From contig JBLDXI010000054.1 in the NCBI GenBank assembly GCA_047495785.1, forward strand, positions 2,418,001 through 2,482,000: DNA of 64,000 nucleotides, given 5' to 3'. Shown piece after piece: positions 5,782 to 63,755 of this stretch. Numbering within the stretch: position 1 is the first letter of the stretch; every line of letters begins with the position of its first letter. The position numbers and the translations under genes are program-made. The notes under the pieces are model-generated. The model was not told where the DNA came from and did no database searches. It worked only from the letters and a program-made list of their open reading frames with translations. Source of the DNA: Lepidodermella squamata. Its lineage: Eukaryota > Animalia > Gastrotricha.

Positions 5782-5839
5782 ATGATGAACGTTATCCCTG
5801 TCTGTATGAAAATCTGTAGACACAATTCCTCGTTTCTGA
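5782..5839 (+). ncRNA. Box C/D snoRNA copy 14 (double guide)
   Basis: Same boxes and guides; 75 nt to acceptor. Confidence 0.9.
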
Positions 5840-6060: not shown

Positions 6061-6325
6061 TGTTTCTATCCACCTTAATATTTTGAAAAAGGTACGCGGG
6101 ATTGTTAATTAGAAAAATTATTTTTCAGGTATTGTTCGGTAGCATTTCGCTGCTGGCTGGAGGAGGCCGCCAATGTCACAACGTGTTCTGATGGCCCAGG
6201 TTACGATTTTTAAGATGGAATACTCGCATTATGTTTTTGCTGATATCATGTTTCGGCACTGCTAAATTTGAGTCGAAAAATTTAATTTCTAGATTTATTT
6301 TTTGGAAAATAATTGAAACTTGACA

Positions 6326-15515: not shown

Positions 15516-16051
15516 AAAATCGAAACTTCGATTAATAATATTCCACCTTCAAAAATAACAGCATTTGAAAAACTGATATGATACGAAACCTGTGCGTTGA
15601 ACAATAATCATTCAATTCTTGTGAGCTTTTATTGTCGATTGTAGTCTCATATTTCACAGATTATTCAACGAATTCTATTGGTATAACATTTCAATCACCG
15701 GAATAAAACAATTAACATTGCTTTGGCTTGATATAAATTGGTGTTGTTTTTACGGAATATCTTTCAGTGGAACCAAATTTAAGGTGAGCGGAACGGAACC
15801 AAGCTCAAAATGTGCCGAGTCATTTTTTGAATAATTTCATGAATTTTAGGCGATTTATGAAGTCTGAATTGAACACTCTGTCTAATAGAGAATGTTACGC
15901 TGAATTTACTGGTGATTTTTTTAGAACCATTGTGGTCAATCTTGACTCGCAAAAAATATCCGAAAAAGTGATTTCAGGCCACAAGAAAATTCCAAAAATT
16001 GGTTCCGCTCAACGTAAATTTGGTTCCGGTAAAAGGAGGACCCGTTTTGTT

Positions 16052-17824: not shown

Positions 17825-18666
17825 GTGGCAAAAGATTCCTAAGTAAAATTAGTCGAAAAACTATGCTGCGTACTGCGTAGGGCCGAACAAAAAACTGGGG
17901 GCTATTCATATTCTCCAAAAAAACCACTATCGCCATTGAATCGCCTTTCAGCTTATTCGTAAAGAGACCTACCTAAAAGGTGCGCGAGATTGAGACAAAT
18001 GACACAACGCATGCTAAGAAAATTTAAAATAATCCAATCTGTTTTTTTCTGAAAATAGACACAGCTGATGCGATTCGACAATTACACAAGGCCCCGTTTT
18101 TATTTGAAATGTGCATTTTTTGCAATTTTTCCTGGCGCCCGTCTAAAGTTGGCTGGATTTTTTCACTGCTCAATGTCAGATTTATTGGAAATTTATATTA
18201 AATTTTCTACATTCCTAAAGCACCTCAACATAATTTTGGCCAGTATTAAAGTTTTCCTGTGTTGTGTGCAAAAAAACTCCAGAGTCCTAATTCCGGCCGC
18301 CCGACCGAAATTAGGTCGCTGCGGCCGAATCTAGGAAGTGGCTGAAGTTAGGGCGGGGTTCTCTATTTTTTTTCAAATCAACAAGAGTCGGAAAACAATC
18401 CGCTTTGCTGCCATAACACAGGAAAAAAACACCGAAAAAACAACCGTCGAATCACGTGATGGTCGCGCTAAAAATTAAGCTGGGCGTTTAAATTATACAC
18501 AGCAATTTTTTTCCAAAAAAACAACTCGTTGAAAAAATGTTGGCAACACTCGTGCTGTATTTTCCTAACCGCAACCGAGCTCATTTTATACCTTGTTTAT
18601 GACTTTGATTTTCAGCCTTTTAACCACTGAATTTGAACTTTTTATACATGCTACCAGCCTGTCCAA

Positions 18667-19845
18667 ATGTCGGCCAAGCTTTTCATTCACCGGTCATGCT
18701 GTGTCTTCGGCTACTCGACGCCAATTCTGCGAAGGGTGTCACTTAGCAGCCAGAGATATTCACTTCAAAACATGCCTGAAAACAACGGCAATATTTCCGA
18801 TTTCGGCCGATCAAACGCGCTAATTGAGCATCGAAATCCGGAAAATTGGCTCATGAAGTTGGATCAAACGGCGGCGAAACGGGACTCGATTTCGCCATTC
18901 ATTCAATCGACAGTTATTGGCAACCCTGTTGAATGGTCGATCCGCCTAACGGAACCACCCGGGTACCAACATGGAACCGACCTAGTTTCAACTTTCGCCG
19001 CTTTTAAAACTGCGATTCGAAAGATCAAATTCGTTTTTCAAGTCCATGAGAATGAAATGTTTGAATTCCTTCGCAACATTCCAGGCTCTCTCGAATTGTT
19101 GCCGAATTTATCGAAAATTCTGAAAGTTCGAGACGGCGGTTTCATCGGCCATGCAAATTCATCGCAGAATATCGGAACCTTCCGCCAATCGCCATTCTGC
19201 AACGCAATTTTCCAGCCAAGCGATGCAATTTCGGCTGAAAGGGCGTTGGAACAAGCGGCGAGATACGTCCCGAAAGGCAAAATGTCCGTAATTAGGACAT
19301 CGAATTCTCGCAATGACTTGATGTATTCATCAAACGACGAATTTTCGATTGGGCGGGCGAAAATTTTGCGGAGACCGCCGCCAAATGAGGCGTCGCACTG
19401 TTTAGTTGTGGCCTGCGGTCGGGTTGTAGGCGAGGCGATTAAGGCGGCTGATTATTTAGCCGATGATCATGGCATTCAAATCACCGTCATCGACCCTTTT
19501 ACGGCAAAACCGATCGATGTGAAAACTATTAGCGATGTGATCAGTCAAAATGGCGGAAAATTGGTTATTGCCGAAGAAGACTGTTCGGAAGGTGATAAAA
19601 ATTCATAAAAAAAATATTTTAAATTTTAATAATTCTAATTAGGTGGATTTGGCGAGGGTTTATTGTCCTGTTTATTGTTGGAAAATTTCCCGCCTACGAG
19701 ACTTGAGTGTGTTAGACACCTTGCGGAATCCTATGTTGACTTCAAAGCTGTTGTTTCTGCTGTCCGGTTGGTTTGCGATCGAGTTCGGCAATATCCTGGC
19801 GATGATTCAGAAATTCGGTCACGCAAATTATCTAAGATGAAATGA
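18667..19845 (+). CDS. Divergent truncated transketolase-like protein (C-terminal half only); exons 18667-19591, 19643-19845
   Basis: [33 protein letters not shown], and an EG|GFGE intron at the same position as in TKT1/2; no TPP-binding N-terminal domain. Confidence 0.7.
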
Positions 19846-36577: not shown

Positions 36578-37222
36578 ATGAAATTGCTCAGGTTAGCCTA
36601 CGTTCTAGCTTCAGTGTTTCCGGGATATTACGCGGGCTATCGAGACAGATGCCCCTGTCAATCGCCATTCGTATGCGTTGGCCTATGCCGATGCCCGGAG
36701 AACACGCCTTACTACGACGGTAGTTCGAGCTGCTCGAGCGTATCTACAGCTTGCACGAATTGCTTGAGCTACGGAGATGCCTGCACTTCAACCTCGAATT
36801 GCAAGGGCACCCTGCAATGCCTAGGCGGATATTGTACTTGCAACTCTACCCATCCTATATTCATTAATTCTCAGAACTCTTGTACTAACCTTCAGTTGAT
36901 TGGCTCATCAGCATGTTCGGCATGCTTCCCTTATGGATTTCCTTGCGAGTCTTCAACAAATTGTATGGGATCTCTCAACTGCATCAACGGAGTTTGCAGT
37001 TGCCCTAACGGGACGTATTACAACGGAACAGGAACTTGCCCTACAGTCAAAGGCTGTGTTGGATGCAGAACTATTGGCCAAACTTGTCTGAATAACACCT
37101 ACTGTAGCGTTGGATTGCTGTGTAAAAACTGGGTTTGTTCAGGGCTGAATTCAACTAAGAGCATCGGTTTCTTAGTCATAGTGCTTCTTAGTCTTCCTTT
37201 TTCAATACTGATTAATAAATGA
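36578..37222 (+). CDS. Cys-rich EB-module-like surface protein A1 (probable GPI anchor)
   Basis: Signal peptide, four YG..C....C.G.L.C..G.C.CP repeats, hydrophobic C-terminal tail. Confidence 0.85.
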   Translation: MKLLRLAYVLASVFPGYYAGYRDRCPCQSPFVCVGLCRCPENTPYYDGSSSCSSVSTACTNCLSYGDACTSTSNCKGTLQCLGGYCTCNSTHPIFINSQNSCTNLQLIGSSACSACFPYGFPCESSTNCMGSLNCINGVCSCPNGTYYNGTGTCPTVKGCVGCRTIGQTCLNNTYCSVGLLCKNWVCSGLNSTKSIGFLVIVLLSLPFSILINK

Positions 37223-37241
37223 CTGCTATTACCATTTTAGA

Positions 37242-37916
37242 ATGAGTTTACTATTTATCGGAACTATCTTAATGGTAACTGGATTCGTGCGATGTCAGAA
37301 GAATTACGGGGAATCTTGCTATTCGAATAGCGATTGCTCCGCCACCATGATCTGCACTGGCTATTGTACTTGCCCAAGATCCAGCCGTTATTACATCGGA
37401 TCGAATCGCTGCAGCTCAAATCCGTCAAGCTGCAATGGATGCATAAATTTCTTAGAAGAGTGCTCCGATACCTCGAGCTGCGCTGGCCTTCTGTCTTGCG
37501 TCAATGGATTCTGCTTCTGCCCTCCAGAACGACCAGTTTTCATGGGTCTAAATTATTGCACTGACAGTGCTTGCAGTGGATGTATTGCTTATGGCCAATC
37601 TTGTACAACAACTGCTTCTTGTGCTGGGAATTTGATATGCACTTCTAACGTATGCCGATGTTCGAGCGGCTTGTCGTACAACGGGACTAACTATTGCTAC
37701 AATGCGACGAATGTTAAATGCACTAATTGTGTTAAGGAGGGTCAGACTTGTATCTACTCCTATCAATGTTCGGACGGCACTGTTTGCCGTAACTACGTTT
37801 GCGCTTCTAGTTCGCCAAAATTAGCAACTATGATTAGTCATGAGCTCTACATCTCTATTTTCCTATACTCCTTACTATTATCGTGCTATAAGATTATTTT
37901 TTCAAGAGTTGATTGA
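37242..37916 (+). CDS. Cys-rich EB-module-like surface protein B1
   Basis: Signal peptide, same repeat type, hydrophobic C-terminal tail. Confidence 0.85.
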   Translation: MSLLFIGTILMVTGFVRCQKNYGESCYSNSDCSATMICTGYCTCPRSSRYYIGSNRCSSNPSSCNGCINFLEECSDTSSCAGLLSCVNGFCFCPPERPVFMGLNYCTDSACSGCIAYGQSCTTTASCAGNLICTSNVCRCSSGLSYNGTNYCYNATNVKCTNCVKEGQTCIYSYQCSDGTVCRNYVCASSSPKLATMISHELYISIFLYSLLLSCYKIIFSRVD

Positions 37917-37942
37917 AGTTCAACAATTTTTTTAATTTATAG

Positions 37943-39552
37943 ATGAAAATTCATATAACAAGATGGAACTTGAATTTCGCTGTAATCTACAACCTATTCG
38001 CGCTAATTTATGCCCAGTACGACGGTGACGTCGAACCTGAAGGATGCCGGGTGCCAATACGGCCTTACTCCGTTTTGACTGATAAAACTGCTAGGAGGGC
38101 TGTCCGGTCGGAGACTTATTTGCCATATGGCTCAATTCTAGTCATGGAATGTAGGGATGGATTCGCTCTTACCAACCCTGAACTCAACGAATTCGGATGC
38201 TTGGAAAATGGAGAATGGTCGCAACAACTTCCTAGATGCGCTAGGTCTCAACGTAAGAAAATTTAATATTGAAATAATTTTAAAGACTTTGGGTTTTAGC
38301 TGACTTCACAACCTGCGGTGTGAATTTGGTACCTAAAATCTACGGCGGATCTTTCGCACGCCCGGCCGAATTCCCATGGATGGCGAAGTTGGAAATAACG
38401 TATTCGAATTCTCAAGATGTGGCAATTTGTGGAGCCACCTTAATTGATAGATCATGGCTATTAACTGCCGCTCATTGCCTCACCGAGGGAAATGCGAATA
38501 TATTAGCAATCATAATTTATCTAGGACGAACTAATTTCACAGCGGATGAGCCGACAGAGGAGAGGAGATTCTCAAATACATTTATTATCCATCCTAATTT
38601 CAGCAAAATCGACAACTATGACAGCGACTTTGCTCTAATAAACATATCACCTCCAGTCAATTTACGTCAGCAAATTAGAACGATTTGCCTGCCGGACAAT
38701 CTATGCGATAGAAATCAATCAAGAACTGCCAATAGGATAGACGGATGCGTTGCAGTTCAATCAGCAGGATGGGGTGCCAACGAGAACGGAGAAGCGATAT
38801 CTAAATCGCTGAAAAAAGTCAATTTAACAATCACGCCACGACTGGAATGCGAGAGGGACGGAGGTTATACAACCGTGACGGATTCTCAAATGTGCGCAGG
38901 CCGCCAGGTTGCCAATCAGGACACTTGCGTTGGAGATTCTGGGGGTCCGTTGATGTGTCGACCTGGCGGCTCGGTTGGGCCTCACTACATAACCGGAGTG
39001 GTCTCTTATGGCGGTTCGTGTGGTTCCTCGTTAATTCCCGGTGTTTACTCAAGAGTTTGCTATGCATTAAGCTGGATTCGAGGCATAATGAATGGAACAA
39101 TCAGTATTACAACTACAACTACTACTCTACGAACATTGAGAACGAGATCTTTGGCAACTGCTATGAGTGTTACCCTTCCGATAACAAGGCCCAGGCGGAC
39201 AAGGCCTACTGTCAGCTCAAATGCTACAACCAATATTAGTAAGTCCATCGTAGAAACAGATACTTTGAATAAATGAATTGTGCTTACAGTGTTAGTCACT
39301 GCTGGGGACGTTTCGACCACCGTGGATTCAACTGTTGAGCCTAAGCCAGTAACAAATCCACCACAGCTAGTACCGAACGCTGATCAGAGCACGTTAGCAC
39401 CTACGAGAACAGACGGACTACCCCCTCCTCTTGATGCTAATCTAGGCCTAATTGTCGGAATGATTGTATTAGGCACTTTGTTAGTAGGCATTACTATATT
39501 TTTACTAGTTTACTTTTGCTCGCCGGATTGTGATGGCTTTTACATAAAATAA
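37943..39552 (+). CDS. Sushi + trypsin-like serine protease + mucin stalk + TM (P1); exons 37943-38252, 38300-39238, 39290-39552
   Basis: K|IYGG activation site, TAAHC, DFAL, DTCVGDSGGP, C-terminal TM ending CSPDCDGFYIK. Confidence 0.9.
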
Positions 39553-39763
39553 AGAATTGGCAATTTTGAAGAGTCTCTTAAAATCGCAAAAATATGATAT
39601 GAATTAGTTGATGGAAATTATTTGTTTATTACTACGAGTTAAACGCCCTCTGATAGATTAAACATGAATTTACTCAAAACTCATTAACTCAACTATAGAA
39701 GCTGAAGGAGAGATATGACAACGTGTTGTCAAGCCATTGAATAGTATTTAGCTACATGAAAAA

Positions 39764-40417
39764 ATGATTGCACGTTTACTCTTCATTACGTTGAGTTTTC
39801 TCCTGTTTTACCACGTCGACGAACTTGAATCAGCATACAGAGATCCATGTCCATGTTCAGGGTCGTTTGTTTGCAATGGTTACTGCCGATGCCCTGAGAA
39901 CTCGCCCTATTACAACGGCCAAAATTGCGTATCGAACATTCAAGGCCAGAACCAGTTACAAAATCTCTGTACTAATTGCATAGCTTTTGGTGATGCCTGT
40001 GTTACGAATTCAAGTTGCCGAGGTTCTTTGACCTGTTACGGAGGTTATTGCACATGTCCATCTTACAACATGATATACACCGGTTCCGATTCCTGTGCCA
40101 CCCCAACAGCCTTCTCAACGACCTGCTCAGCTTGCGTCGGCTACGGCTTAACTTGTACCGGGTCGACTCAATGTGCAGGAAATCTGATTTGTTCGTCAGG
40201 TACCTGTTCCTGCCCTTATGGTTACAGTTACAACGGGAGCGATACCTGCGTCGCGGTTAAAGGCTGCAATGGCTGTCGAACAGCCGGCCAAGTATGTGTG
40301 AACAACACCTACTGTGAAGTCGGTCTTTTATGCAGAAACTGGGTTTGTTCATCCGGTTTCAAATTTATGACTAATGGCCTGTTATTTTCCGCCCTTTCTT
40401 TTATTTCGATAGTATGA
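39764..40417 (+). CDS. Cys-rich surface protein A2 (paralog of A1)
   Basis: YRD.CPC...FVC.G.CRCPEN.PYY start and C.NNTYC.VGLLC.NWVCS end shared with A1. Confidence 0.85.
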   Translation: MIARLLFITLSFLLFYHVDELESAYRDPCPCSGSFVCNGYCRCPENSPYYNGQNCVSNIQGQNQLQNLCTNCIAFGDACVTNSSCRGSLTCYGGYCTCPSYNMIYTGSDSCATPTAFSTTCSACVGYGLTCTGSTQCAGNLICSSGTCSCPYGYSYNGSDTCVAVKGCNGCRTAGQVCVNNTYCEVGLLCRNWVCSSGFKFMTNGLLFSALSFISIV

Positions 40418-40448
40418 AATAAATTTTTTTAAATTTTAGAAACTTAAA

Positions 40449-41120
40449 ATGTTGACTTTTATTCTCATCGCTGCTCTGGGAATTGAATTAATCGAAGCTC
40501 AAGTCAGTTATACGCGAAATTATGGAGAAGTTTGTTATTCCTCGACTGATTGCGTTCGGTCTCTCACCTGTCAAGGATGGTGCAAGTGCAACTCTACGGT
40601 GCCTTTTTATCAGGGCAAAAATGTGTGTACTTCGGCCTCAACTTCTTGCTCATCCTGCGTCGCATTTACGGGGGCCTGCTCCGAAAATGCTAACTGTGCT
40701 GGTAGCCTGAAGTGCTATGCCGGCTATTGCTTGTGCCCTGTCGATCGACAGCTTTATCAAGGCAATAACTTCTGCTCAGATACAACTTGTTCTGGCTGCG
40801 TGGCCTACGGCGGGACTTGCGTCGCCTCCCAGTCGAACTGTGCTGGTAATCTTGTTTGTAACAATACCGTTTGTTCATGCCCATCGGGTCTCAAATTCAA
40901 CGGAACAAACACTTGCCTTGATGCTACTCAGCTGAAATGTTCGAACTGTGTCAAAGAAGGACAAACTTGCATTTATTCATCACAATGTATGGTTGGCAAC
41001 GTTTGTCGCAATTATGTATGCTCTCGGTCCTCCTTAATTTCTCGTAGTTTCACAGCTCTGATTATCTCAATAATATTTCTTAACGAAATTTATGTTGAAT
41101 CATTGTTTATTCTTATTTAG
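40449..41120 (+). CDS. Cys-rich surface protein B2 (paralog of B1)
   Basis: NYGE.CYS..DC start and NCVKEGQTCIYS.QC..G.VCRNYVC end shared with B1. Confidence 0.85.
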   Translation: MLTFILIAALGIELIEAQVSYTRNYGEVCYSSTDCVRSLTCQGWCKCNSTVPFYQGKNVCTSASTSCSSCVAFTGACSENANCAGSLKCYAGYCLCPVDRQLYQGNNFCSDTTCSGCVAYGGTCVASQSNCAGNLVCNNTVCSCPSGLKFNGTNTCLDATQLKCSNCVKEGQTCIYSSQCMVGNVCRNYVCSRSSLISRSFTALIISIIFLNEIYVESLFILI

Positions 41121-41121
41121 G

Positions 41122-42792
41122 ATGAGGTTAATAACCTTAGGAAGGTATTTATTAATTTTAATTGTTAGCCAAGTTTCATGTGAGGATGATGTCGATGACG
41201 ACGATGGTTCAAATTGCCGGGTTCCTGTTAGGCCTTACTCTGTGATAATTAGGAAAGATACCGGGAATCCCGTTCGACCCAACTCACTCTTGCCAGCCGG
41301 AAGTGTTATAACCATTCAATGCCGAGATGGCTATGCCCTCACAGAACAATCGAGTTACTCTGAAGTAACCTGTGGAACAGGAGGTGACTGGGATCTCGAA
41401 TTGGCGAGATGTGGAAGAATTGGGCGTGAGTAATTCAGAGTGTTCTCAACATTAATTTGAATTCATTTCTCATCAGCTGATTTCTCACCCTGTGGTGTCG
41501 GAATTATTTCGAAAATATACGGCGGAGTTTATGCTCAACCTGCTGAATTTCCTTGGATGGCCAAACTCGAGATAACATATGCCACTGCTTCGGAAATTGC
41601 GACGTGTGGCGCAACTTTGATAAATCAATCTTGGCTCTTAACAGCTGCTCATTGCTTAACGGAGCGAACCGGTGACATCTTGGCAATAATCATCTATCTA
41701 GGCAAAACTAATTTCTCATCTGAAATTGAAGTCGGCGAAGAGAGGAGGTTCACGAATTACTACATCATTCATCCGGATTATAATAAGCGGGATAACTATA
41801 ATTTCGACTTCGCCCTTATCAAGCTCACGCCTCCAGTTGTTTACAAGAGAACAATTCGAGCGATTTGCCTACCGGATAAACTTTGCGATGCGAATTCGTC
41901 GAGAACTACCACTCGAATCGACGGCTGCGTCGAGACGATCGCAACTGGTTGGGGTGCGACCGAGAGAGGGGAACAGCTATCGAAGGCCCTTAAAAAAGTC
42001 AATCTGACTATGACATCCCGTGTGAAATGTGAACGAGACGGTGGCTACGACGCGGTAACTGATGCTCAAATGTGCGCCGGTAGGGAGGTGGCTAACCAAG
42101 ACACTTGCGTCGGGGATTCAGGAGGACCGTTAATGTGTAGACCCGGTGGTTCTATTGGTCCTTATTATCAAACTGGTGTGATCTCTTACGGAGGATCCTG
42201 CGGTGTTGCGAACTATCCCGGAGTTTATGCAAGAGTTTGCAGAGTCTTAGACTGGATTAAAGCCATTATCAATGGAACTTCAATAGCTAGTTTGACCCAG
42301 ACAAACCGTACAAGGAATACAACGCCCGCTCAATTAAGTGAAACTACTGAGAGTTCCGATCAAGTTTGCACAGACGAGGGAGCTCCCCCAGTCGTGAACG
42401 GAGTTCTACTTCCCGGAGCCACTCGTAGAAAAGTTCAATGCAACCCTGGCTTCGGGGTCGTAGGGGCGGATACAGTCGAATGTCAGTTAAATGGAACTTG
42501 GACTGCACCTGGCAATTGTCGCAGGCGTCGAAGCACTACCCTGGAACCAGTCTCAACGACAACAGTTTCTCAGGTGGCTATAGTTCAAGTTACTAGCCAA
42601 AGCACAGTTTTGGTAAAGATCCAGCCTCCAACTATTACGATATCAGAAACGACCACACCGAAACCGCCGGATCCTGACAATCTAGGAATTATCGTTGGAA
42701 TGTCAGTTTTAGGTGTAATATTAGTTACTGTGACAATTTTTCTACTTGTATACTTCTGTTCACCAGATTGCGATGGTTTTTACATAAAATAA
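41122..42792 (+). CDS. Sushi + trypsin-like protease + sushi + TM (P2); exons 41122-41425, 41477-42792
   Basis: KIYGG, intact His/Asp/Ser triad, C-terminus CSPDCDGFYIK identical to P1. Confidence 0.9.
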
Positions 42793-44957: not shown

Positions 44958-47456
44958 ATGCTTCTGACTGCTCTGTTGGCAGTTCTATCCTGCTTTAAAG
45001 TACAATCTCAATTCACTACCCCTGCAGCTACCAATTTCACTACAATTTCCCCGAGAAAGCAACTGAGCAAATTGTCAGTTCTTGTTTTGCTCCCATTTAC
45101 TGGCAACGAGCCAAGAAATTACGAAGTCTGCCGAAATGTTATCGAGACTATTTTCGACGTCGTTAACCGTCGCTCAGATATTCTCCCGGACTATCAGGTC
45201 ATCCCAACGTTCAGAGATGAAAAATCGAATGGTAATGAGACTCCGAAGCTACTAATGGATTACGTCCAGTCAATTTTGGATAACGGATATTACAAATCGC
45301 CCCTAGTACTCGGACCTGTTTTCAGCACCGGTTGCGAGAAATCCGGCCAAATGTTGCACCATGTTGATATGGTCGCTGTTGCTGTAGGTTGCATTTCCCC
45401 TACTCTCACTGCTAGGCGGGATATTTACCCGAATTTGTATCGCATACGAATACCTAATCAACTGGCCTCTTACCCAAGACTGAAGTTTATTCTGGAGGTT
45501 GGCAAATGGCAGGAAATCGCGATTTTAACCACACCCTTATCTCGGGAATTTCTCACGTCACAAGACTTCATGTCCTTGAGTATGGATTACAACATTACTG
45601 TTGTTTGGTTTAATGCTGTCATGGAAATCGATCAAGCTACGTTAATCTCCCTTAAAAGCAGCGATGCCCGAATTATCGTGATCGATGGTGTGACATCGTT
45701 TTTCGTGCTCCGATTCTTGTGCATGGCTTATGACATCGGTATTACGGGGGCTAAATACGCTTTCATCGCGTCAACCTACGCCTACAACGATCCATCTTTT
45801 TTACCGAGAAGTATCGGGGCTGGTTGCAGTCGTAATGTAATCATCGAGCAAATGAAGATCACATTCTGGATAGGCGAAACTGTGATTGGATCTGTAAAAA
45901 CCAACCATAATTCGTCCCTTGGTTACACATCAGCTCAATTCGACGCGATGGTCGCAGCTAGGATGTCGAATAGGGAGGACATCTCAGAATCTGCCGAGCG
46001 ACAAACCTGTCATGATGCTGCTCTTTTAGGCCTATTAGGTCTAGAAAATGCAGAAAGAGCCCTAGCAAAGCAAAATTTAACCTTGAAAAATTACTCGACT
46101 AATCCATATGAAGTGATGAAAATCTTGAATTCAAGTGTTGCTCAAACTTCGTATATCGGCTTACGTCAAAGTACCGTCTCCAAATATTCGAAAAGGCTGG
46201 AGATGGATGACGAGCCGCAGGTGATTGCGCAATGGTCCGCCGCGAAGAAACTCGAAGATTTATTCATCGTAAGTCGAAAGTCGAACCGAAGTGTAGTAAG
46301 TTACGACGATTTCAAAATGGAAGCTGACAATCCGGTAATTTGGCTCGGATCCAATAATCAACCACCACGGGATAGGTCAATTCGTGTGATATCCTATGAA
46401 TTCTCTCCTAATAGCTACATCGGAGTTATAGCAACACTAGCAGGGACGATTTTCATCCTTCACTTGTTGACCCTTTGGCAATTAGTCACATATCGGAGAA
46501 ATATAGAGGCAGTGAGGAGGTTGTATAGGCCCATCATTGTTTTCGTAATAGGATGCATGTTCCTTGACGTCGCTTCCGCCATGCAGACGTTCGGCTTTGC
46601 AGATCTGCCCGAAGTAACTTGTTTCATTCGTGCAGCTCTAACTATGATCGGAATTTGCTTGGTTCATGGCTATTTGGTTTCGAGAATGGCGATATCTAAT
46701 TACAACGCTGTGCGGCGGCAAGTTATCAACCCTTTTCACAGCTCAAACAGGACCGCTCAATCATCCTTGGAATATCGAAACAGGATAGGATCAATATTGG
46801 TCCCGTCTCTGTATCCGCCGACCAGGGGTAGCATGGCTCGAATGATGAAAGCTGCTTCTTTTCGAAGAAATCTCATTAGGTTAACTCAAACCATCGCACC
46901 AATCGCCGAGGAGGAAATCACGATATTTCTGGCTGAGAAAATCATAATTCTAACCAGTGTAGCTCTTACTGCAAGTGCTTTCATTTTTGTAGCAACATGG
47001 TTCGGAATCGATACCCCTAGATACAAATATACTTCAACTGAGCCAATCTACAATCCACTAACAGATTCTTTCACGGAAAGCGTTTTCGGCCGGTGTCAGT
47101 CCGATACTATGCTTCAATGGGCTGTTATTTTAGCTGGGGTCAATGTTTTAGTCGCGTGTTTGGAGGCATACCTTTCTTACAGAGTGACAAACCTGTTGAT
47201 AGTCAACTTTCCTCTCGACATCAAGCCACATCGAACTGCGGTGATGAATGATTTCGTGCTATCGCTAGCTTTCAGTGTACTCTTAATAATCGATGGGACG
47301 GTAGTTCAGCAAATCGCTTTGGCAGTCGTGACATTACTATTATCGGCAACAACAAGTTTCACGTTACTATATCCGATTCTGAAGGTAAATGTTCGCCAAT
47401 CTCGGCGAAATTCGCTCTCGACTAGCAACGCAACAGATTTTTCCGTTCAGCGTTGA
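44958..47456 (+). CDS. Intronless divergent class C GPCR (GABA-B-receptor-like)
   Basis: Signal peptide, Venus-flytrap motifs (VN.RSDILPDY, LGPVFS.GC, SPTLT.R..YPNLYR), W....PP.D linker without a Cys-rich domain, about 7 hydrophobic segments. Confidence 0.8.
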   Translation: MLLTALLAVLSCFKVQSQFTTPAATNFTTISPRKQLSKLSVLVLLPFTGNEPRNYEVCRNVIETIFDVVNRRSDILPDYQVIPTFRDEKSNGNETPKLLMDYVQSILDNGYYKSPLVLGPVFSTGCEKSGQMLHHVDMVAVAVGCISPTLTARRDIYPNLYRIRIPNQLASYPRLKFILEVGKWQEIAILTTPLSREFLTSQDFMSLSMDYNITVVWFNAVMEIDQATLISLKSSDARIIVIDGVTSFFVLRFLCMAYDIGITGAKYAFIASTYAYNDPSFLPRSIGAGCSRNVIIEQMKITFWIGETVIGSVKTNHNSSLGYTSAQFDAMVAARMSNREDISESAERQTCHDAALLGLLGLENAERALAKQNLTLKNYSTNPYEVMKILNSSVAQTSYIGLRQSTVSKYSKRLEMDDEPQVIAQWSAAKKLEDLFIVSRKSNRSVVSYDDFKMEADNPVIWLGSNNQPPRDRSIRVISYEFSPNSYIGVIATLAGTIFILHLLTLWQLVTYRRNIEAVRRLYRPIIVFVIGCMFLDVASAMQTFGFADLPEVTCFIRAALTMIGICLVHGYLVSRMAISNYNAVRRQVINPFHSSNRTAQSSLEYRNRIGSILVPSLYPPTRGSMARMMKAASFRRNLIRLTQTIAPIAEEEITIFLAEKIIILTSVALTASAFIFVATWFGIDTPRYKYTSTEPIYNPLTDSFTESVFGRCQSDTMLQWAVILAGVNVLVACLEAYLSYRVTNLLIVNFPLDIKPHRTAVMNDFVLSLAFSVLLIIDGTVVQQIALAVVTLLLSATTSFTLLYPILKVNVRQSRRNSLSTSNATDFSVQR

Positions 47457-52103: not shown

Positions 52104-53183
52104 AAACCAGTCATTTACGAGGTTTTTATTAAATTTTCGCTGCATTAGATTTCCCATTTCTTTCAATTGTTCACTTCGGCATTGCAATGCAATTTGCCAG
52201 ATATAGAGTATTTCAAGCATTTTATGTAATTCTTAATTATCTAGAATTTTCACCAAAGAAAATCAATAAATTATTTCAAAAATTTTTCAAATTATTTTGA
52301 AATTTTTTATGAAAATTTTAGAAAATATTAGAATTTGATTACAATTATTAGATAACCAGATATTACGATTCAATTGAGCCTGCTTATTTTGATCGATTTT
52401 CAATTAGTGATTCTACTGAAGTTTGGATCTCTAGCTATTTCTCAGAAGTACAGCAAACAGTTGGGAAAGGTAGTTTAAGAAATTGCGTCAAGAATCGAGC
52501 ATGAAAGCAGTTAAATGAGAGCGTTGTTTACACTAGCTGGTGCTCACGCTGTGCTAAGCCGGCCCCTGGCTCGCATTTCTCTCATCCTAACGTAATTTCT
52601 AAGAAAACTAACAAGCTGCCTAAGCGAGTCTGAATATGCTAAATAATTCGATAGGTCTGTTAATTCTCATGCTGGAATGACTTTTCAACTCGCAAGCATT
52701 TGAAATTACAGCTGCAAGTTTGGGTCCACAACTTCAAAACTATAGTCTTTTGTATATTAGTATGTTATCCCTCTTGTTTACCTCGGGCAAGGCACCATCT
52801 AGAATCTGAACGTTTATTACCTCATCCCTCCGCAGACCAAATAAAAGGAGTCCAGTTTAAAAAAAGGCGTTTCACAATTAGCGTTAAATATACATGTGAA
52901 ATTAAAATTAAAACTGAAATTTTTTCGCCTTTAATTAAAAAAACCAAGAATAATCGGTGAATGCATCCCCAAGGTAGTTTTTTGTGCAGAATTCGAATTT
53001 GAGATCGAAAATGTGATTAGGCGACTGCAAATCAAAGTTGCCAAAGCAAAGCTGTTCGGAGATTAAGCTCTAACAATAAATTGCCATATCTGACCATAGG
53101 ATCGGTTCATACCCGGTTTCTATTGGTAGTTATCGGTACTACCGGTTGTTTCAAATGATAATACCGGTACTTATGGAACCCTG
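52021..53183. mobile_element. Non-autonomous hAT-like element
   Basis: Termini CAGGGTTC...GAACCCTG, 8-bp TSD CATTGGAA (52013-52020, 53184-53191), subterminal ACCGGT-type motifs. Confidence 0.85.
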
Positions 53184-53272
53184 CATTGGAAAAGCCTAAT
53201 TGATACGATATTACATTGCTTGCGACCATAGTACTGATTTTAAAGAAATTGAAAATAAAAAATTAATAAAAA

Positions 53273-53373
53273 GACATAGGGTTAGCGCGGCCAGTTTAGG
53301 ATGGGTAATACCCAACTAACTCTCCCATAGAATAAGTTGTGAAACGAAGTAACTGCACCACAAGGCCCATGCC
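53273..53373 (-). ncRNA. Vault-RNA-like Pol III RNA, copy 1 (101 nt)
   Basis: GGCATGGG..GTGGTGCAGTT-ACTTCG...AACTGGCCGC-GCTAA..CCTATGTC-TTTTT; GATAAAA at about -29. Confidence 0.7.
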
Positions 53374-54138
53374 AAGATCTGTTACTTTTTTGCTATTTTA
53401 TCGTTGCGCTATGCAAATAATATTTCTAGAAGGAATAAAGATAAGGGAAACGCTCATTTGCAGCAGTACGGAGAATACCGAATACATTACGCTGAATCCG
53501 CAAGTCCAAACCCAGGAGAAATAATAAGTAACGACGTGATAATACTCGCGGCCAATGGCATTTATAAGAGAAAAACAACTGCTGAACCATAACAACCGAT
53601 CGACTGCTAAACTGCAATAACGAACAAGTGCGGAGTCACCGAACGATGATGCGATAAAAATAATGAAGACACATTGTAGCTCCGCAGATAAATAAATTCA
53701 GTGTGTCTACTCGGAAGATCCGGGCTACATCTTAGGCCAACTACGTGTTGCTTTGATGGTCGATATGATAGAATAAATGGCGCTTGGCAGCACGCGATTC
53801 TTTCAATTGATTATAGGGTATGATAAAAATCACACCCACCAACCCGACCAACCCCACTATCCACTATCGCGACCGAGCCAGCAACAAGTAGTTGGACTTT
53901 GACACTGTATATCGAGACTAAGATGTATAAGGAAACAATTCCCTACCGCAGTTAATTACTGGGAACTCTTCGAATTGATTAGCGAATTTACAGGTATTTT
54001 CAAGTATTTATTGAGCGGCATTTTGTATATCGTATGTATTTTCCACTCTGGTCCAAAATTTTTTAGTCTTACTTCTTACTTCGGATCTAAAGGAGTGGCT
54101 ATTGCTTATCTCCGAAAAATAAAAATTAAATGGATAAC

Positions 54139-54169
<31 letters not shown>

Positions 54170-54278
54170 GGACGTGAGACTTGCGCGGCCAGTCTATCAT
54201 GAGTGTGTACCCGAAGTATTCAATCAGTTGAATAAACGCGTTGTGAAACGAAGTAACTAAGCCACATGGCACACGTCC
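54170..54278 (-). ncRNA. Vault-RNA-like Pol III RNA, copy 2 (109 nt)
   Basis: GGACGTG..GTGGCTTAGTT-ACTTCG...GACTGGCCGC-GC..CACGTCC-TTTTT. Confidence 0.7.
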
Positions 54279-54712
54279 CGCAGCTGTGTCGATAGTGGGC
54301 TGATAAGGATAGTTGCGATCTGCCTGGAATGCATGTACTAGGTTTATATCAATGTTTGCATTGAATGCTAGTCAAAAGGCATCATATCGTTACCGTTTTA
54401 GAATAACTCGGATTTGAACTTACGTAAGTTCTCAGCTGATAGGCGACTTGTAAATAGTCACGTTGTTACGTAAAAAAACAGAAAAATATACATACTTCTT
54501 TTCATTCATCGTTGTGAAAAAATTCAGAGCTTTAATATTTAAATCGCAAATAAATTTCGTAATGTCAAATGTTGTCTTGCCTGCGATTTGTATTTAATTT
54601 ACCGCAAACTAGATACATCATGGAGATCAGATTAACCCAGGTTAACCCAGGTTAATCTGATCTCTATGCCTTATGCCTAGATATTACGAAAAAATAAAAA
54701 ATAAAAATAAAA

Positions 54713-54806
54713 GACACAGCGAGAGCGCGGTCAGTTTCAGTCAGAATTCCATCATCTTTTAATCTGGATCCATCCGCCGAAGTAACTGAGCCACAGGGCG
54801 CGTGTC
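54713..54806 (-). ncRNA. Vault-RNA-like Pol III RNA, copy 3 (94 nt)
   Basis: GACACGCG..GTGGCTCAGTT-ACTTCG...AACTGACCGC-GCTCT-CGCTGTGTC-TTTT; TATAAAA at -30 (54836-54830). Confidence 0.75.
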
Positions 54807-54957
54807 AAAACGCTAAGCACTGAGCGTCCTTTTATACTGGCAGTAATATCGATCCTCGATAAGTTATTAATATATTGATTAAGCTGTATAGTACCTCTAT
54901 TCACCGTGGTCTCCATCAACTAATAGAACAATTTTTATTCCAAAATGTAAATCTGTA

Positions 54958-56177
54958 TTAGTCTCTGACCATTTCAAGGCCAATAACGACATTTACCGTG
55001 ATAACAATAATTGTCAGCGTTAGGCAAGCACTTGCATCGAGAAGTTTGTGAAATGGCAGTCTGAATCTCACGAAAGAAAGGTCACGTTTCAATTTGGAAG
55101 TCTTTGAATGCGCCAACGCGTTGGTAACTGCGGCGTAAAAGACGAAGATAACTGCACTGAAGCTGTTGAAAGACATGAGGTCTAACAGCAGGACGCGATC
55201 TGGCGTTTTCGGGATACTCCTCATATAGCTGTCTCTTGCAACAGTGAATGACAGCAGCATCAGAGCTGAATATCTATAAAAATAACTAAAATTTGAAAAA
55301 TTACGTTTCAAATTGAATTCTCTTACATTACTCTCTCATCTCGGCCGAACGGAATGAGAAACACTGCGAATTGCGAAGCAGTTAAGGTTAGGAGAGGAAT
55401 TATCAAATTGTGCACGAAGTACCAAGTTCTACGCCTCAACTCCATTCCGAATTTCAGCAGATGGAAATTGGTTTCTGGCGTTTCAGCCAGCGTCAAATTA
55501 GCCCAAGTCTTGTCAATAGACCAACCAGAGTTTCGTTTCGAAGCTAATTGGGTCGACTTCATTGTAGCAAATTTTACGGCTTCTCTAGGTAGCCTGATCA
55601 TAGAATCTGACTGCCAGATCCCAAATTCGAGCCAACAGCTTTGCTTATCGAAGGGAAATTTCCGTAAATGTAGACTGCACTCCGAAACAAAACGACCGGT
55701 ATAGTAATGGCTTATGTTACCCTTGTAAGGTAACACATTCATCGCATGTGAAATGCCCTCGCCAATCATCGAAAAGCCGATGTCGCTGTTTTCATGGGTG
55801 ACAGGAATTCTCCAGAATAGGTCCGTATTAGTGTGGTGTATCCATATCGGCGGAACAGGGCTCTTTAAACTTAGCTTCCTCGTTGTATTAGCTATACATT
55901 CCAGATTAAGGCGGATTATTAAAGAGCCGACAACTGTGAACGTCTGCTCGAAATCGTCGATGTTTTTAAGGTGCTCCAATAGAAATACAACTTGAGCTGG
56001 AGTTGGCTTAGACGGGTCATTTTCGTTGGCAGCTGTAGCTAATGGGGTCAAGAGACAATTAGCAAAAATGCCAAGACGAATATCGCCATCTCGCCCCAAG
56101 CCCTGGCAGTTAATTAGCCGAACACGACATGTCACAATCAAAATCCAAGTCGTTACGAAAAAAGCAAGTCCAGTCAT
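54958..56177 (-). CDS. Divergent Cys-loop ligand-gated ion channel subunit 1 (2 exons)
   Basis: Signal peptide, Cys-loop CSLHLRKFPFDKQSC, LRRR..YF..NLIIP M1, four TM segments. Confidence 0.85.
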
Positions 56178-56821
56178 TGAATCGAGCGGAATAAACTAGT
56201 ATATTGTGCTATTATGATATTGTGGTAATGATGTGTTGAGAGTGTAATAATATCATATAAAGGATTTTGTTGTGTTTATAAACGATGCGGTTTTTTTCGC
56301 GCGTTGTATACTACCTCGCGGCAAGTCTTGCGGTGCGATTCAATTTTTGCCGCGCCCAATGTGTGTGGCCGAGGCAAGAAAAGCGGCTTGTGAGAAAGGC
56401 CTCGCTTTGCGCCAACGAGTTTATTGCCTAACGCGAGTTTTAGTGTTATGCGATCAGCTCCATAAGCAAATAGCTTGGCTATTAGTGAATACTTACCTAC
56501 CCAATTATATAATCATTCGAAGTATTTTAGTGATTATTTATAAAGGCAATTCGATTTTACAATCTAAGTAACAATCCATAATAAATCAATCCATTATAAA
56601 ATCTATAATTTTCAGCTTTATTAAAAAACTTTAAGCAGGGTTTGTACAGCAAAGAATTAACCTGTTGAAGCAAGAGGTGATTTGCTGAAACAGCATACAA
56701 GTTGTTCTGAAGTTGTTGCCATGCTCAACGGCCAGCGTTGACATTTAAAAAAGATGATTCCTCTTGGGAAAAAATAAAATATAAAACGAAAATGTTTCTT
56801 TCGTCCAGCGTTTCGTATTGT

Positions 56822-58079
56822 TTAAGAGCTCAGATTCATCAAGATCAAAGCTCCGAAATTAACGGTAACCAGCCCGATAAAAGTTATCAGCAAGGCGATG
56901 TTATCCATAACTTGCTTGACAAGGCTAACTCGACCGCATATTTTGACTTCGCGCTCCATTCGAACGATCCACGTCTTCCCCTCAGCCAGGCGACAAGTGA
57001 TAGCGGCGTAAAAAGTGACAAAAAGAGCGGAGAGGGTGTCACAGGAAATAACCTGCATGAGCCATAGATTTTCCGAAGTCTTAGGAACATTCGCGATGAC
57101 ATTTGCCTGTTATAAAAATTTTAATATAAAATTACTAAAAAAGGATAGGCAATTGCTTACCTGAGCCACTGAGAACGCAAGCAAGATAGTAATTCCGAAC
57201 GCTGCTCGATCCGAATCTCCGAACGGTAAAAAGAAAACTGCAAGCTGAGCGACAGCGATGATTGCACAAGGCAGAATCAGATTGAAGATGAAATAATTGA
57301 CGCGGCGCTGTAGATTCAGTTCAAATTTGATGGTGTGATATCCAAGGTTATCGTTCAGTCGAAGGTAATCGAATGCAGCATTCATTTTCAAGATATCCCA
57401 ACCAGAATTTGCCGATTGGAGCTGTGGCGGATCCAGCGCGAACATTTTCACACTCTCAACATCAATCATGCGCTTATCTTGCCATATTGCGAACTTGAAC
57501 CTTAAAATGAAAAGTAGGAATAATTTCAAACGCGATTTGCCTCGCATTAACTTACGAGCACTTCTGCTTATCGAAAGGGAAATTAACTAGGGATAAGGCA
57601 CATTCAGATATGAAGAGACCACTCCACGCGTACTGAACGATTCCCTCGAAAGGATAAATAACAAGGCTATTGGCAAAAGCGTTTGAAATGGCGAAATCCG
57701 ACTGGGCGTTAATGTGGGAAATAGGCGGTCGCCAAATTTGATCAAGGCCTGAGAACAAGATCCATGTAGGCGAAAGAGGAGCGAGTTCTGGGTAGGTAGC
57801 GTTGTAGAAGATGCTTCGCTCAGCGATGCATGGCACCGTGAATTGGAGCTGTATAGTTCCGATGGCTGAAACTGTCTGCTCGACGTCATTGATATCCTTA
57901 AATTGCATCAACATGAAATCTACGCTCGTCGCGGATGGAGTGCTTCGGCTTTTCTCATTCGGAGAAGTGGCTAGAGGAGTGAGTTGACAATCCTTGATCA
58001 CATTCATTCGAAGTTCGTCAACGCTCATACTCGTTACGAGATAAAAACAAGCAGGCAAAACCAGTGCCGCCAGAGTCAT
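56822..58079 (-). CDS. Divergent Cys-loop ligand-gated ion channel subunit 2 (3 exons)
   Basis: IWRP, CALSLVNFPFDKQKC, YFIFNLILP, DRAAFGITILLAFSV, PKTS. Confidence 0.9.
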
Positions 58080-59470
58080 TTCGTAATGTAGAGGGGATAA
58101 AACCGAGACAAGGTGATAAGGAGAGATTTTTGCCGGCCTTAAGTATAATTGCGATGTTTTCGTTTGTCGCCGATTTACCGGATATTACACGAATACGTCA
58201 GTGACAAAAGGATTGACGGCAGCAAACGATGACGTTTATTGGCGTCAAACACCAGGTTTGCCACCTGGATTCAACTGCGTAATATCCGTTTTCCGTCCAG
58301 CAGCCGATTTTTGCAATAAATTATAAAATGATAGGTTTTTGGCCGATATCGGAAATCGCACTACGAATAACCTCCCCGATCAGCTTGGAATCAATTCAAG
58401 CGGTATTGCACTGCGCTCGTAAGGCAACATACCAGACATTTTTGCATAGCGATAATCAAAAATGCACCAGCCATCGTTGATTCTACAGACCTAATAGCTT
58501 TTCAATATCATTTTTCGCACATGATTTGTGCCGTATAATACATGGCTAACGGACTTGAATATCACTTTCTAGCTATTGCCAATCGAAAATAGAGCCTTTT
58601 ACTTTTACCATGGGAGTTATTGTATATTTTGCCCCGAAATAGGGTAATAATATTTTGCCATGGTATCAGTGCTCAACTATTTATGTAATTCGTTCCCCCA
58701 CCTTTATCATACGTTTATCGCGCACATCGAACGCCTGATGCCTTTTATTTGGCTCGCCATATGCTCAACCTGCCTCGTCGCTTTTTTCTATTTTCTTCAC
58801 CTATCACCTTTTCCACCCATTATATATATAGATGATTATGGACGGTATTATTCAGCTCGTGGGAGTTCTTCTCTCGGTTATTATTTACTCCATTAGATAA
58901 GGTAACATGTCATTTAAAAATCGATGAGTCATGGCAAATGCGGATATTTCAAGCTTCACTTTGAAGCAAGACAACTGCAGACTATCCGAAAAAGTGCTTT
59001 CATGCTATGCATTTTTTATGTTAGCAATGAAAGCTGAGACTTCTCTCTTGAAATCTGAAGTCAGGTAGTTAGTAATTATGAAATCATTAAAATCTGCACA
59101 GAATAATGCAATTTCGGGGTACATGATCTTTTCAAGGAATAATTACTTGTCTTGTATCACAAAACCAGGTGATGATTCCTTCACAAACATTGAATTTTAC
59201 TGATAACATGGTAACAGATAACATGCATTACTATTTTTAATATTTGATTTACATTTAATTGAGAAAAGACCAATTGAAAGTTCATGTATGAGGTATCGAG
59301 TATAGTCAGCATAACATTTTTTTCAAATTAAATGTTCATATAGCGCGTCCTTTACAAGAGCATCAAGGTTCGATTTAAGCGGAAATTCCCGTACTAGACG
59401 ACAAATAAATCCATGATTCAAAGTTGTGAGTTAAGATATCGAAAATATTCGAGCGAACAGGTATTCATCC

Positions 59471-60712
59471 CTAGTTTGACATCATCAAAATCAGCGCGCC
59501 GAAATTTAAAACCAAAAAGGAAATGAATGTAAGCCAGAAGAAAACGCAGTCAATTACTTGCTTTACAAGCCACACTTTTCCGCAAATTTTCACCTCTTGC
59601 TCCATTCGAATGCTGGAAAGCTTTCGGTCCATAATCTTGCATGTGACTGCCGAGTAGAAAGTAACACAAAGTGCTGAAATCGTGTCTGCAGATATGACTA
59701 GCATGAGCCATAGGTTTTCCGATGTTTTAGGTACATTCGCAATCACATTGGCCTATAGGAAAATTCGGGGAAATTAATTCAAATAATTTGCGGATGATTA
59801 TTAACCTGGGCGACAGAAAAGGCCAGCAAAATTGTAATGCCAAACCCTGCTCTATCTGGGGCCCCAAATGGGATGAAAAAGGTCGCGAGCTGAGCGACAG
59901 CAAGAACAGCACTTGGTAGAATGAGATTGAAGATGAAATAGTTGATTCTCCTCTCAAGGAAAAGCTCAAATTTGACTGTGTGGTAACCAAAACCGTCAAA
60001 CTGAAAATAATCGAACGTTGCATTTTTCCGCAGGATGTTCCAGCCTGAATTTGGCGATTGAAGTCGGCCAGGATCCATTACCGAAAATGATACGCTCTGA
60101 ATATCAATCATATGATTGTTTTGCCAAATGGCGAATTCAAACCTGAAATTAAAAGCTGGGAAAAGCTCATAGAAAATAGTGTACTGATTACCAGCAAGTT
60201 TGCTTATCGAATGGGAAATTAACCAACTTTAGAGCACATTCAGATATAAAAAGACCACCCCACTGGTATTGAATCATACCGTAGAATGGGAATATGACCA
60301 TGTTGTATGAAAAAGAATTCGAAATTGCAAAGTCTGCCTGAGCATTGGCGTGCGAAATAGGCGGTCGCCATATTTGATCAAGGCCGGAAAATATGATCCA
60401 ATACGGTGCATAAGGAGCGAGTTCGGCGTCCGTTGAGTTATAGAAGACGCTTCGCTCGGCTACGCATGGTACGGTGAAAAACAGCTGAAGCGAGGCGAGG
60501 GTTGAAACTGTCTGCTCGACGTCATCGATGTCTTTGAACTGCATCAATGCAAATTCAACCTTGGTTGGTGCCGGCTTGCTTCTGTCCTTCTCGTTGGGTG
60601 AAGATGCTAATGGTGTGAGTTGGCAATCATTGATTATTTTCGTTCGCAGCTCGTCAATAGTCGATGCGTACGTCTGGCTAGCGACGAATAAAGCGAGAAG
60701 AATAAGCATCAT
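59471..60712 (-). CDS. Divergent Cys-loop ligand-gated ion channel subunit 3 (3 exons)
   Basis: CALKLVNFPFDKQTC, PDRAGFGITILLAFSV; same introns as subunit 2. Confidence 0.9.
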
Positions 60713-62329
60713 GACTCGAAATAAGCCGAATGAATTAAAATCTGCGATTCGCTTTTCATTATATCGCATCGAAATATTTTGACTGACATTCCCATAGTTT
60801 TCATATCCGTAATGGAAAATTTTTAGCGGATATTGAATTAATAAAACCAATCAACAGGCAATAGTAGGCATCAACATTTCGCAACCAGCTCTGATATGAC
60901 AGCTTGCCCAACGCTTCTAGAAAATTCGAGTAAAATTTTCATGGAGTCAAGAAAAGTATGAATCAGCATTGCTCTATGTGACATCTGAAACTGAACCCTA
61001 AAACTGACGTCTAAAAGGCAGGCGCTTATGTTCTTTCCTTGCTGCACGACTGTTTTCCCAGCTTGAGCTAGCCTAAATAAATGGTCTGAATAAATGGTCA
61101 GCGCAACCCTTCAGGTAAAGCCAATTGGCAAACCAGGGATTGGGATCCTGATCCTCCCTGCGGTCGGAGAAGGAGCGCCAGGTGAAAGCCTGAAATTGAA
61201 ACTTAAATATTACATACAAGAATATTCTTTTTTGGAGCTGTAGTCATTATGGATAGAGTGAACATCATGACACATGACATGATGTGCTTCTAAGCTCTTT
61301 GCATTAGTTGTCGCTTGTCGCTTGTCGCTCTAGCAGATTGGTAACGATGACTGTGTTGAAATCTTGTAACTCCTAACACTTCTACTGCCAAATCAAGCGG
61401 TCTGAGCTCCAGAATGTTGATCCAAATTTTGGATCCGGGTTCTCTGTTTGAATTATATCCAAATTAAAATTCAGCTAACCCTGACTTTGATTCCTTGTTC
61501 AGCAGCTATTAGACTAAAATGACAACCAAATCGAGGAAAGCTTTACTCAGAAAATGTACTTCTCTTGGGCTTTCATAGCCACCATGACGCTGAAAGTAAA
61601 TATATAATGATAGGCTACACGTGATATTGCTGGCACGAGCACTGGCTAATGATAGAAGCTAACGTTTAAAATAATATGGAGTGTCAAGAATTGGGGCAAG
61701 GAACATGGGGATCCTCTCACAAATATCAAGTCAAAATTATGGATCAAGACTTGACGCCAACTTTTCAATCCTGCTTGATTCAACTCTTTTTCATAGACTT
61801 CCGACCAAACTCGCCAGGGAGGTGTCCCCGGCACTACCCTCTACCCTGGCATCCCCTGATATTTCCCTGGCATCCGAATCTCGGAAAGCCTTATCGCAGC
61901 CTAACTTGGAGGTTGGCCATTTTGCATTTTGACGACAAGGCCAAAAATAAAAAACTCGTCGACTTTGGAATAGCCTATATCTGAGGCAAAGTAGGCGTTG
62001 GAGAAAGGGCTGAGGCTAGAAATCCCAACGAGTTTCCTCGGAAATAGGGTCATTTGAAAGCCTTAATTTGGCATTACTTGGCGATAAAAGTAACTGTTTC
62101 AATTCTTTTCCCACGAAACGAAATGTATTTCGTGTATTTTATTATCCTTTCATTCACTTTTAACTCACACAAAATCAGGGGAAATTAGTCCTTAACAAAC
62201 AGTACTTATATTTTGATAATAACTTTATGCAATAGCATTAAATGAATAAGACAGAAAAGTTCCGCAGACAGCTTCGATCCCATGACAGTTCATGTATGAG
62301 GTATCAAGTAAAGTCAGTATAGTCAGGAG

Positions 62330-62366
62330 AGTATAGTATAGTATAGTATAGTATAGTCAGTATAGT
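62330..62366. repeat. (AGTAT)n microsatellite
   Basis: agtatagtatagtatagtatagtatagtcagtatag. Confidence 0.8.
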
Positions 62367-62518
62367 AAAGATTTTTATAATTAAATATTATATATTGATA
62401 GCGCATCTTTGTCAAGTCTTTGTTTGCAGAAGTTCGCGTTAAAAAATAAACAATGCCTTGAAATTCCTCAACTCAAAGTTACTTCCTCAGATCGAAAAAT
62501 TCGAGCGACGGAGTATCC

Positions 62519-63755
62519 CTAGTTTGACATCATCAAAAACAGGACACCAAAATTAATAACCAAAAAGCATAAAAATGTAAACCAGAAGAAAACGCAGTCA
62601 ATAAATTGCTTTACAAGCCACACTTTTCCGCAAATTTTTACCTCTTGCTCCATTCGAGTGCTCCAAGGCTTTCGATCTACCATCTGGCACGTGACTGCCG
62701 CGTAGAAAGTGACACAAAGTGCTGAAATCGTGTCTGCAGATATGACTTGCATTAGCCATAAGTTTTCCGATGTTTTAGGTACATTCGCAATCACATTGGC
62801 CTAAGAATATTCGGGGAAATTAATTTAAGTATTTTGCGGATGATAATTCACCTGAGCGACAGAAAAGGCCAGCAAAATTGTAATGCCAAACCCTGCTCTA
62901 TCCGGGACCCCAAATGGGATGAAAAAAGTAGCAAGCTGAGCGACAGCCAGAACAGCACTTGGTAGAATAAGATTGAAGATAAAGTAATTGATTCTTCTCT
63001 CAAGGAAAAGCTCAAATTTGACTATGTGGTAACCAAAACCGTCAAACTCAAAATAATCGGATGTTGCATTTTTCCGTATGATGTTCCAGCCTGAATTTGG
63101 CGATTGAAGTCGGCTAGGATTCAGTACCGACATTTTTACTGTCTGAATATCAATCATATGATTGTTTTGCCAGATGGCGAATTCAAACCTGAAATTCAAA
63201 GTTGAGGATTGTTCACAATACAATTTCTATTAGTTACCAGCAAGTTTGCTTATCGAACGGGAAATTAACCAACTTAAGAGCACATTCAGATATGAAAAGA
63301 CCACTCCATTGATATTGAATCATACCATAGAATGGAAAAATCAGCATGTTGTATGAAAACGAATTCGATACAGCAAAGTCTGCCTGAGCATTGGCGTGCG
63401 ACATAGGAGGCCGCCATATCTGGTCGAGACCAGAATATATGACCCAATACGGTGCATAAGGAGCGAGTTCCTCATCAGTTGAGTTGTAGAAGATGCTTCG
63501 CTCGGCTACACATGGTACGGTGAAGTACATCTGAAGTGAGGCAATTGACGAAACTGTCTGCTCGACGTCATTGATGTCTTTGAACTGCAGCAACGAAAAT
63601 TCAACCTTTGTTGGGGCCGGCGTGTTTCTGTCCTTTTCATTCGGTGAAGATGCTAATGGGGTGAGTTGGCAATCATTGAGTATTTTCATTCGCAGCTCGT
63701 CAGTACTTGACGCGTACGTCTGGCTAGCGAAGAATACCACGAGAAGAATAAGCAT
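62519..63755 (-). CDS. Divergent Cys-loop ligand-gated ion channel subunit 4 (3 exons; recent duplicate of subunit 3)
   Basis: Highly similar to subunit 3, including introns and upstream flank (60780-60960 vs 63825-64000). Confidence 0.9.

Follow-up and report, generated by a model that had tools for sequence, protein, structure and literature searches.

Three short predicted genes of Pol III type, resembling vault RNA genes, lie in a cluster on the minus strand of the analysed window, that is, the whole 64-kb stretch of Lepidodermella squamata DNA (GC content 42.6%). The cluster is intergenic: a Cys-loop channel gene, likewise on the minus strand (ORFs 55323-56177 and 54958-55311), ends about 150 nt before it, and the opposite strand carries a laminin-G/trypsin ORF about 1.2 kb away. 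The L. squamata genome comprises 122 Mb in 157 contigs with a GC content of 43% (PMC11660948), and it is compact and fast-evolving, its transketolase being about 60% identical to those of other animals. The channel gene is one of the divergent genes for Cys-loop ligand-gated channels that are arrayed in tandem at 54958-63755 (-). The window also contains tandem transketolase genes (6320-19608), with two full split copies (6320-8214 and 10809-14915) and a degenerate transketolase-like ORF (18667-19608). At 36578-42792, a cassette encoding two cysteine-rich membrane proteins and a trypsin-like protease, separated by very short spacers, is present in duplicate. The features of the cluster are as follows.

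53268..53373 (-), copy 1, vault-RNA-like Pol III-type gene: 101-nt panhandle plus T5 terminator (53272-53268)
53345..53361 (-), copy 1, 5' motif: box-A-like sequence (9/11, at +14) overlapping the TTACTTCG core; makes up the 5' arm of the upper helix
53285..53295 (-), copy 1, 3' motif ACTGGCCGCGC: covers the 3' arm of the upper helix and the GC that begins the 5-nt 3' loop
53396..53402 (-), TATA-like GATAAAA at -29 of copy 1, of putative function
54165..54278 (-), copy 2, vault-RNA-like Pol III-type gene: 109-nt panhandle plus T5 terminator, with more T-runs after it
54249..54265 (-), copy 2, 5' motif: box-A-like sequence (9/11, at +15) plus TTACTTCG
54183..54193 (-), copy 2, 3' motif ACTGGCCGCGC
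54709..54806 (-), copy 3, vault-RNA-like Pol III-type gene: 94-nt panhandle plus T4 terminator, with more T-runs after it
54778..54794 (-), copy 3, 5' motif: box-A-like sequence (9/11, at +14) plus TTACTTCG
54725..54735 (-), copy 3, 3' motif ACTGACCGCGC, with a possible box B remnant just before it (7/9 of GWTCRANNC)
54830..54836 (-), TATAAAA at -30 of copy 3

The sequence-only reading had proposed three minus-strand units of 94-109 nt, and all three were found where it had placed them, with stem-to-stem lengths of 101, 109, and 94 nt. Each unit starts with G, carries GTGGYNYAGTTACTTCG near the 5' end and ACTGRCCGCGC near the 3' end, and finishes in T4-T5; the oligo-T run follows directly on the terminal helix (T5, T5, and T4 in copies 1, 2, and 3, respectively) and is backed up by additional runs. 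When the 64-kb window was searched, GTGGYNYAGTTACTTCG and ACTGRCCGCGC were each confined to these three units, the chance expectation for such motif pairs being about 1e-6 per window. Pairwise identity was 58-69% between the units (69% for copy 2 versus copy 1) and 46% between the upstream flanks. With a covariance model of copies 1 and 2, copy 3 was recovered (41 bits, E=1.9e-8) ahead of a next match of 12.4 bits, and the three-copy model gave no fourth copy in the 64-kb window. A fourth exact AGTTACTTCG at 46610-46619 was rejected as a unit; it lies antisense within a GPCR ORF and is not accompanied by the stems.

All three copies showed the same fold, in agreement with the common panhandle layout that had been claimed, and the folding z-scores were -1.45, -2.67, and -3.53 for copies 1, 2, and 3, respectively. 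The panhandle consists of a terminal helix, a 4x5 internal loop, and an upper helix of 4 bp, a 1-nt bulge, and 4 bp, with pair probabilities of mostly 0.8-1.0 in the two helices. The terminal stems quoted from the letters were correct, pairing with a probability of 0.8-1.0 though their sequences differ by copy. Every 5' arm paired most strongly with the arm of its own copy (-9.7 to -11.2 kcal/mol, as against -2.7 to -6.6 kcal/mol across copies). The terminal helix is the most variable part, its 3'-side bulge being T, C, and T in turn, and the middle region is variable as well, whereas the UUACUUCG core is invariant in the three copies. The upper helix of copy 3 is formed by GUGG-C-UCAG paired with CUGACCGC, and its bulged C is shared by copy 2. 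The 3' loops read GCUAA, GCAAG, and GCUCU, the last being that of copy 3 (GCTCT in the DNA), and a small hairpin precedes the 3' arm in copies 1 and 2.

The stems had further been described as covarying. This description stood in that three two-sided changes were observed, all of them in the terminal helix, and 96% of the stem cells pair, as compared with 33-46% in slid-alignment controls. It was weakened by the statistics available from three paralogues: the observed values were matched by 12-31 of 500 shuffles. The covariation is suggestive and statistically not strong.

The promoter elements were scored against the type 2 promoter consensus for box A and box B (PMC7279448). The first nine positions of box A are kept at +14 or +15 in all three copies, despite all the changes of stem letters, and the final GG is lost; a score of 9/11 taken alone is reached by 11% of random stretches. 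An exact TTACTTCG follows box A in every copy, 3 nt closer than it does in the Rfam consensus. Box B is a textbook feature of vault RNA genes. That no canonical box B would be visible here was borne out, the best score of 8/11 being the mode of random sequence. At the expected box B site, 5-7 of 9 positions are matched and A-R-A-C is retained, with the 7/9 match found in copy 3. Between copies 2 and 3, a 9-mer at 54419-54411 matches box B perfectly; it was discarded, as its density (0.55 per kb) is that of chance. It adjoins a short stretch near 54400, within 54340-54446, that matches a very high-copy repeat with a depth of about 10,000.

The TATAAAA claimed at -30 of copy 3 was located at 54836-54830. 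The broader proposal that the units use upstream promoter elements is weakly supported: copy 3 has a true TATA and copy 1 has GATAAAA, whereas copy 2 has neither, and alignment of the three upstream regions (46% identity) revealed no common upstream block or proximal element. The upstream 60 nt of copy 1 hold four heterozygous sites. Because known vault genes already combine upstream with internal promoter elements (PMC7058938), these genes could plausibly have switched to a promoter made of box A and upstream signals. The octamer ATTTGCAT lies at 53411-53418, near position -45 of copy 1. It is altered in the other haplotype by a heterozygous site at 53418, so that it is probably not essential. 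A small inverted repeat with a 5-bp stem (54810-54827) is placed between the TATA and the start of copy 3, and TTTT is found just before that start.

The assignment of the units to a family was examined with the Rfam models. At the gathering cut-off, no family was found in the whole 64-kb window, and ranking by E-value over 2.6 kb returned only chance matches to miRNA and other models; no tRNA was reported by ARAGORN. In a cmsearch-type check, the Vault model (RF00006) aligned with copy 1 over its full length (1-99/99) at 13.9 bits, below the cut-off of 34, with E=1.2 over 4227 families and about 3e-4 for Vault alone, a match that surfaces only when copy 1 is scanned by itself. Vault was the sole full-length structured Rfam match of copy 1, and no Vault match was obtained for copies 2 and 3 in the Rfam scans. 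Box A plus the flanking TTACTTCG of Lottia and Helobdella is the most conserved vault seed of lophotrochozoans and was used as such on Fasciola (PMC8824774). This seed and the full-length sub-threshold alignment of copy 1 make a divergent vault RNA family the best reading, as had been suggested from the letters; the new Pol III RNA class offered alongside it is not needed. The accompanying statement that vault RNAs are poorly documented in invertebrates was overstated, as they are present in Lottia, Helobdella, Macrostomum, Fasciola, echinoderms, a hemichordate, and tunicates (PMC8824774). Judging from sequence and predicted structure, we consider it fairly likely that L. squamata has in the units three functional vault RNA genes that arose by tandem duplication and diverged long ago. 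Their membership in the vault RNA family is probable.

In all three copies, box B is lost and the upper helix is re-registered relative to known vault RNAs. These changes would also be expected of a vault-derived family that has expanded and now acts mainly outside the vault, with a promoter rewired such that box B is not required; the handling of trans-spliced mRNAs, or service as decoys for RNA-binding proteins, would be examples of its work. [quoted passage not shown] However, the conserved parts of the units are those defining the vault fold, and mammalian vault RNA is mostly particle-free anyway, so that such a family may not be a separate state at all. We regard this explanation as unlikely. 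The corresponding evolutionary scenario, by which an expanded vault-derived family dropped box B in favour of box A plus an upstream promoter and diversified its loops for an extra-vault role, possibly in trans-spliced mRNA production, is similarly doubtful; if true, it would be the first animal case of a link between vault-derived RNAs and that process.

We prefer the reading as vault RNA genes also over one in which the units are Y RNA genes or genes like those of nematode stem-bulge RNA (sbRNA), with Ro60, the second TROVE protein, as the binding partner. Genes of these two kinds lack box B and are driven by upstream promoters. Like the units, they are clustered, Pol III-type genes for panhandles of about 100 nt with a variable loop and a U tail, and the TATA at -30 in one copy and the upper-helix bulged C in copies 2 and 3 would suit them as well. 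Nevertheless, the Rfam models for Y RNA and sbRNA gave no match with the three copies at E<10. Furthermore, the Ro60-binding bulged C of Y RNAs sits in the lower stem (PMC11825425), where the units have no conserved counterpart, their bulged C being in the upper helix. Conservation within the units is lowest in the terminal helix, whereas the UUACUUCG core is of the vault type and matches Vault. Such genes are quite improbable here.

The copy number and variation of the units bear on whether they are genes or remains of mobile elements. The read depth over the units was about 50-170, like that of the unique flanks, as compared with 1000-5800 for a MITE between copies 1 and 2 (depth judged from the DNA run at 80% likeness); copy 1 was homozygous and represented by one 195-nt contig with a depth of 82. 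No target-site duplications flank the three units, and the sense-strand tails are T-rich rather than A-rich. None of the 31 heterozygous sites in 52200-55400 lies inside a unit (P about 0.03 if the sites were uniform), although this P is optimistic because heterozygous sites come in haplotype blocks. Since the sites are so clustered and six indels stand outside the list of 31, this distribution gives only modest support for purifying selection on the units. The SINE that had been named as the counter-hypothesis, recognisable by dispersed copies with target-site duplications, thus does not account for the units, given their single-copy depth, the lack of such duplications, and the absence of heterozygous sites within them. 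The same observations weigh on the idea that the units are dead copies, either SINE fragments or vault RNA pseudogenes. This idea would explain the missing box B, and the region evidently accepts insertions, as its spacers hold high-copy repeats. It is set against the single-copy depth and the T-rich tails, and against the pairing of 96% of the stem cells in copies that are only 58-69% alike; we judge it very improbable. An unrelated, lineage-specific Pol III RNA class convergent on vault RNA, which would be in keeping with the sub-threshold Rfam score and with an E of 1.2 over all families that is compatible with chance, is scarcely credible in view of the joint agreement of the 8-nt core, two loop sizes, bulge geometry, 3'-loop GC, length, and terminator with Rfam Vault and the fluke genes.

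The MITE-like high-copy element occupies 53734-53925, with 19-nt inverted arms (53734-53752 and 53880-53898) and many variant contigs. At 54619-54668, 40 nt downstream of copy 3, there is a 50-nt palindrome with 25-nt arms (88% complementary) and an internal tandem 11-mer; its alleles differ by small indels, and it gave only sub-threshold matches to miRNA models.

Orthologues of the units were sought by pattern and by synteny. The pattern scan of JGI metagenomes yielded 41 matches, none with the architecture of the units and most from one high-GC protein-coding family; the best-looking of them was rejected, as it lies in a bacterial ORF. All 21 matches from the scan of prokaryote genomes were devoid of the stems. 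As for synteny, the protease gene upstream has no close homologue. The neighbouring channel protein (50%) and transketolase (75%) led to contigs of a related animal in the ENA Central Arctic Ocean metagenomes. This animal has a compact genome, and its transketolase and channel protein are by far the closest to those of the window; the contigs are possibly from another gastrotrich. Their gene order differs, and no copy was detected by the covariance model in about 50 kb of distinct sequence. In the literature, we found no paper joining gastrotrichs and vaults, and two papers on L. squamata make no mention of vaults.

If the units are vault RNA genes, Pol III would start at the first G of each stem, guided by box A together with AT-rich or TATA sequences upstream and not by box B, and would terminate within the T-run; the transcripts would be about 97-113 nt long and carry an oligo-U tail. 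By analogy with known vaults, TEP1 would bind the bulged panhandle through its TROVE domain and stabilise it, a minor share of the RNA would reside inside vault particles, and the variable middle would serve paralogue-specific partners.

Vault RNA is known but poorly understood, and outside deuterostomes the family is missed by standard searches. Should the units be vault RNAs, the family would extend to Gastrotricha. Spiralian vault RNAs, weak box B included, have already been published for molluscs, annelids, and flatworms, and the cluster alone does not make vault RNA function newly testable. The paralogues, only 58-69% alike, display the targets of selection: UUACUUCG and the geometry of the bulged panhandle are retained, whereas box B and the letters of the helices are not. 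These retained features may mark the likely TEP1-binding surface, and they could offer seeds for a more sensitive model.

We finally compared the units with known vault systems. In TBsRNA-10 of Trypanosoma brucei, a divergent vault RNA, the bulged terminal helix and not the overall sequence is the feature by which it is recognised, and the same would apply to the units. T. brucei, a trans-splicing organism, differs in having a single vault RNA gene for which binding to TEP1 and MVP has been shown, as opposed to several predicted genes here; human has four vault RNA genes. In the Rfam Vault consensus, the terminal helix measures 6 bp and is followed by a 5-nt loop, a 4-1-4 helix, UUACUUCG, a variable middle, and box B; on the 3' side come an 8-nt arm, a loop of 5 nt that starts with GC, and a U tail. 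The units share this geometry, being panhandles within the 80-150 nt range of vault RNAs that join both ends and have an internal loop and a bulged upper helix: they are about 100 nt long, with a terminal helix, an internal loop whose 5' strand begins with C and whose 3' strand begins with GC, a 4-1-4 upper helix, an 8-nt 3' arm, UUACUUCG, a variable middle, a U tail, and tandem paralogues. Unlike the consensus, they lack box B, their box A is without the final GG and 3 nt nearer to the core, their upper helix reads GUGG-C-UCAG instead of GCUC-A-GCGG, and their terminal helix measures 7-8 bp rather than 6 bp and differs in each copy.

Fasciola has five expressed vault RNA genes, four of them clustered, in which box B is reduced to GTTC or a variant (PMC8824774). 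By eye, vtRNA1-5 of F. hepatica and the units have the CCT 5' loop and the GTTACTTCG core in common, and the 3' loop of the Fasciola RNAs, GCAAT, is like those of the units in being 5 nt long and starting with GC (PMC8824774). Further common points are a weak or absent box B, clustered paralogues, a spiralian host, and a small hairpin preceding the 3' arm, which among the units is seen in copies 1 and 2. The Fasciola genes differ from the units in their helix sequences, in keeping GTTC or a one-letter variant of it, and in being near-identical and of shown expression, whereas the paralogues here are predicted genes that are 58-69% identical. Because they fall short of the Rfam cut-off and of box B, the units are described as a variant of the vault RNA kind and not as confirmed members. 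Their layout is vault-gene-like, since the geometry and the loops match both the Rfam consensus and the Fasciola genes.
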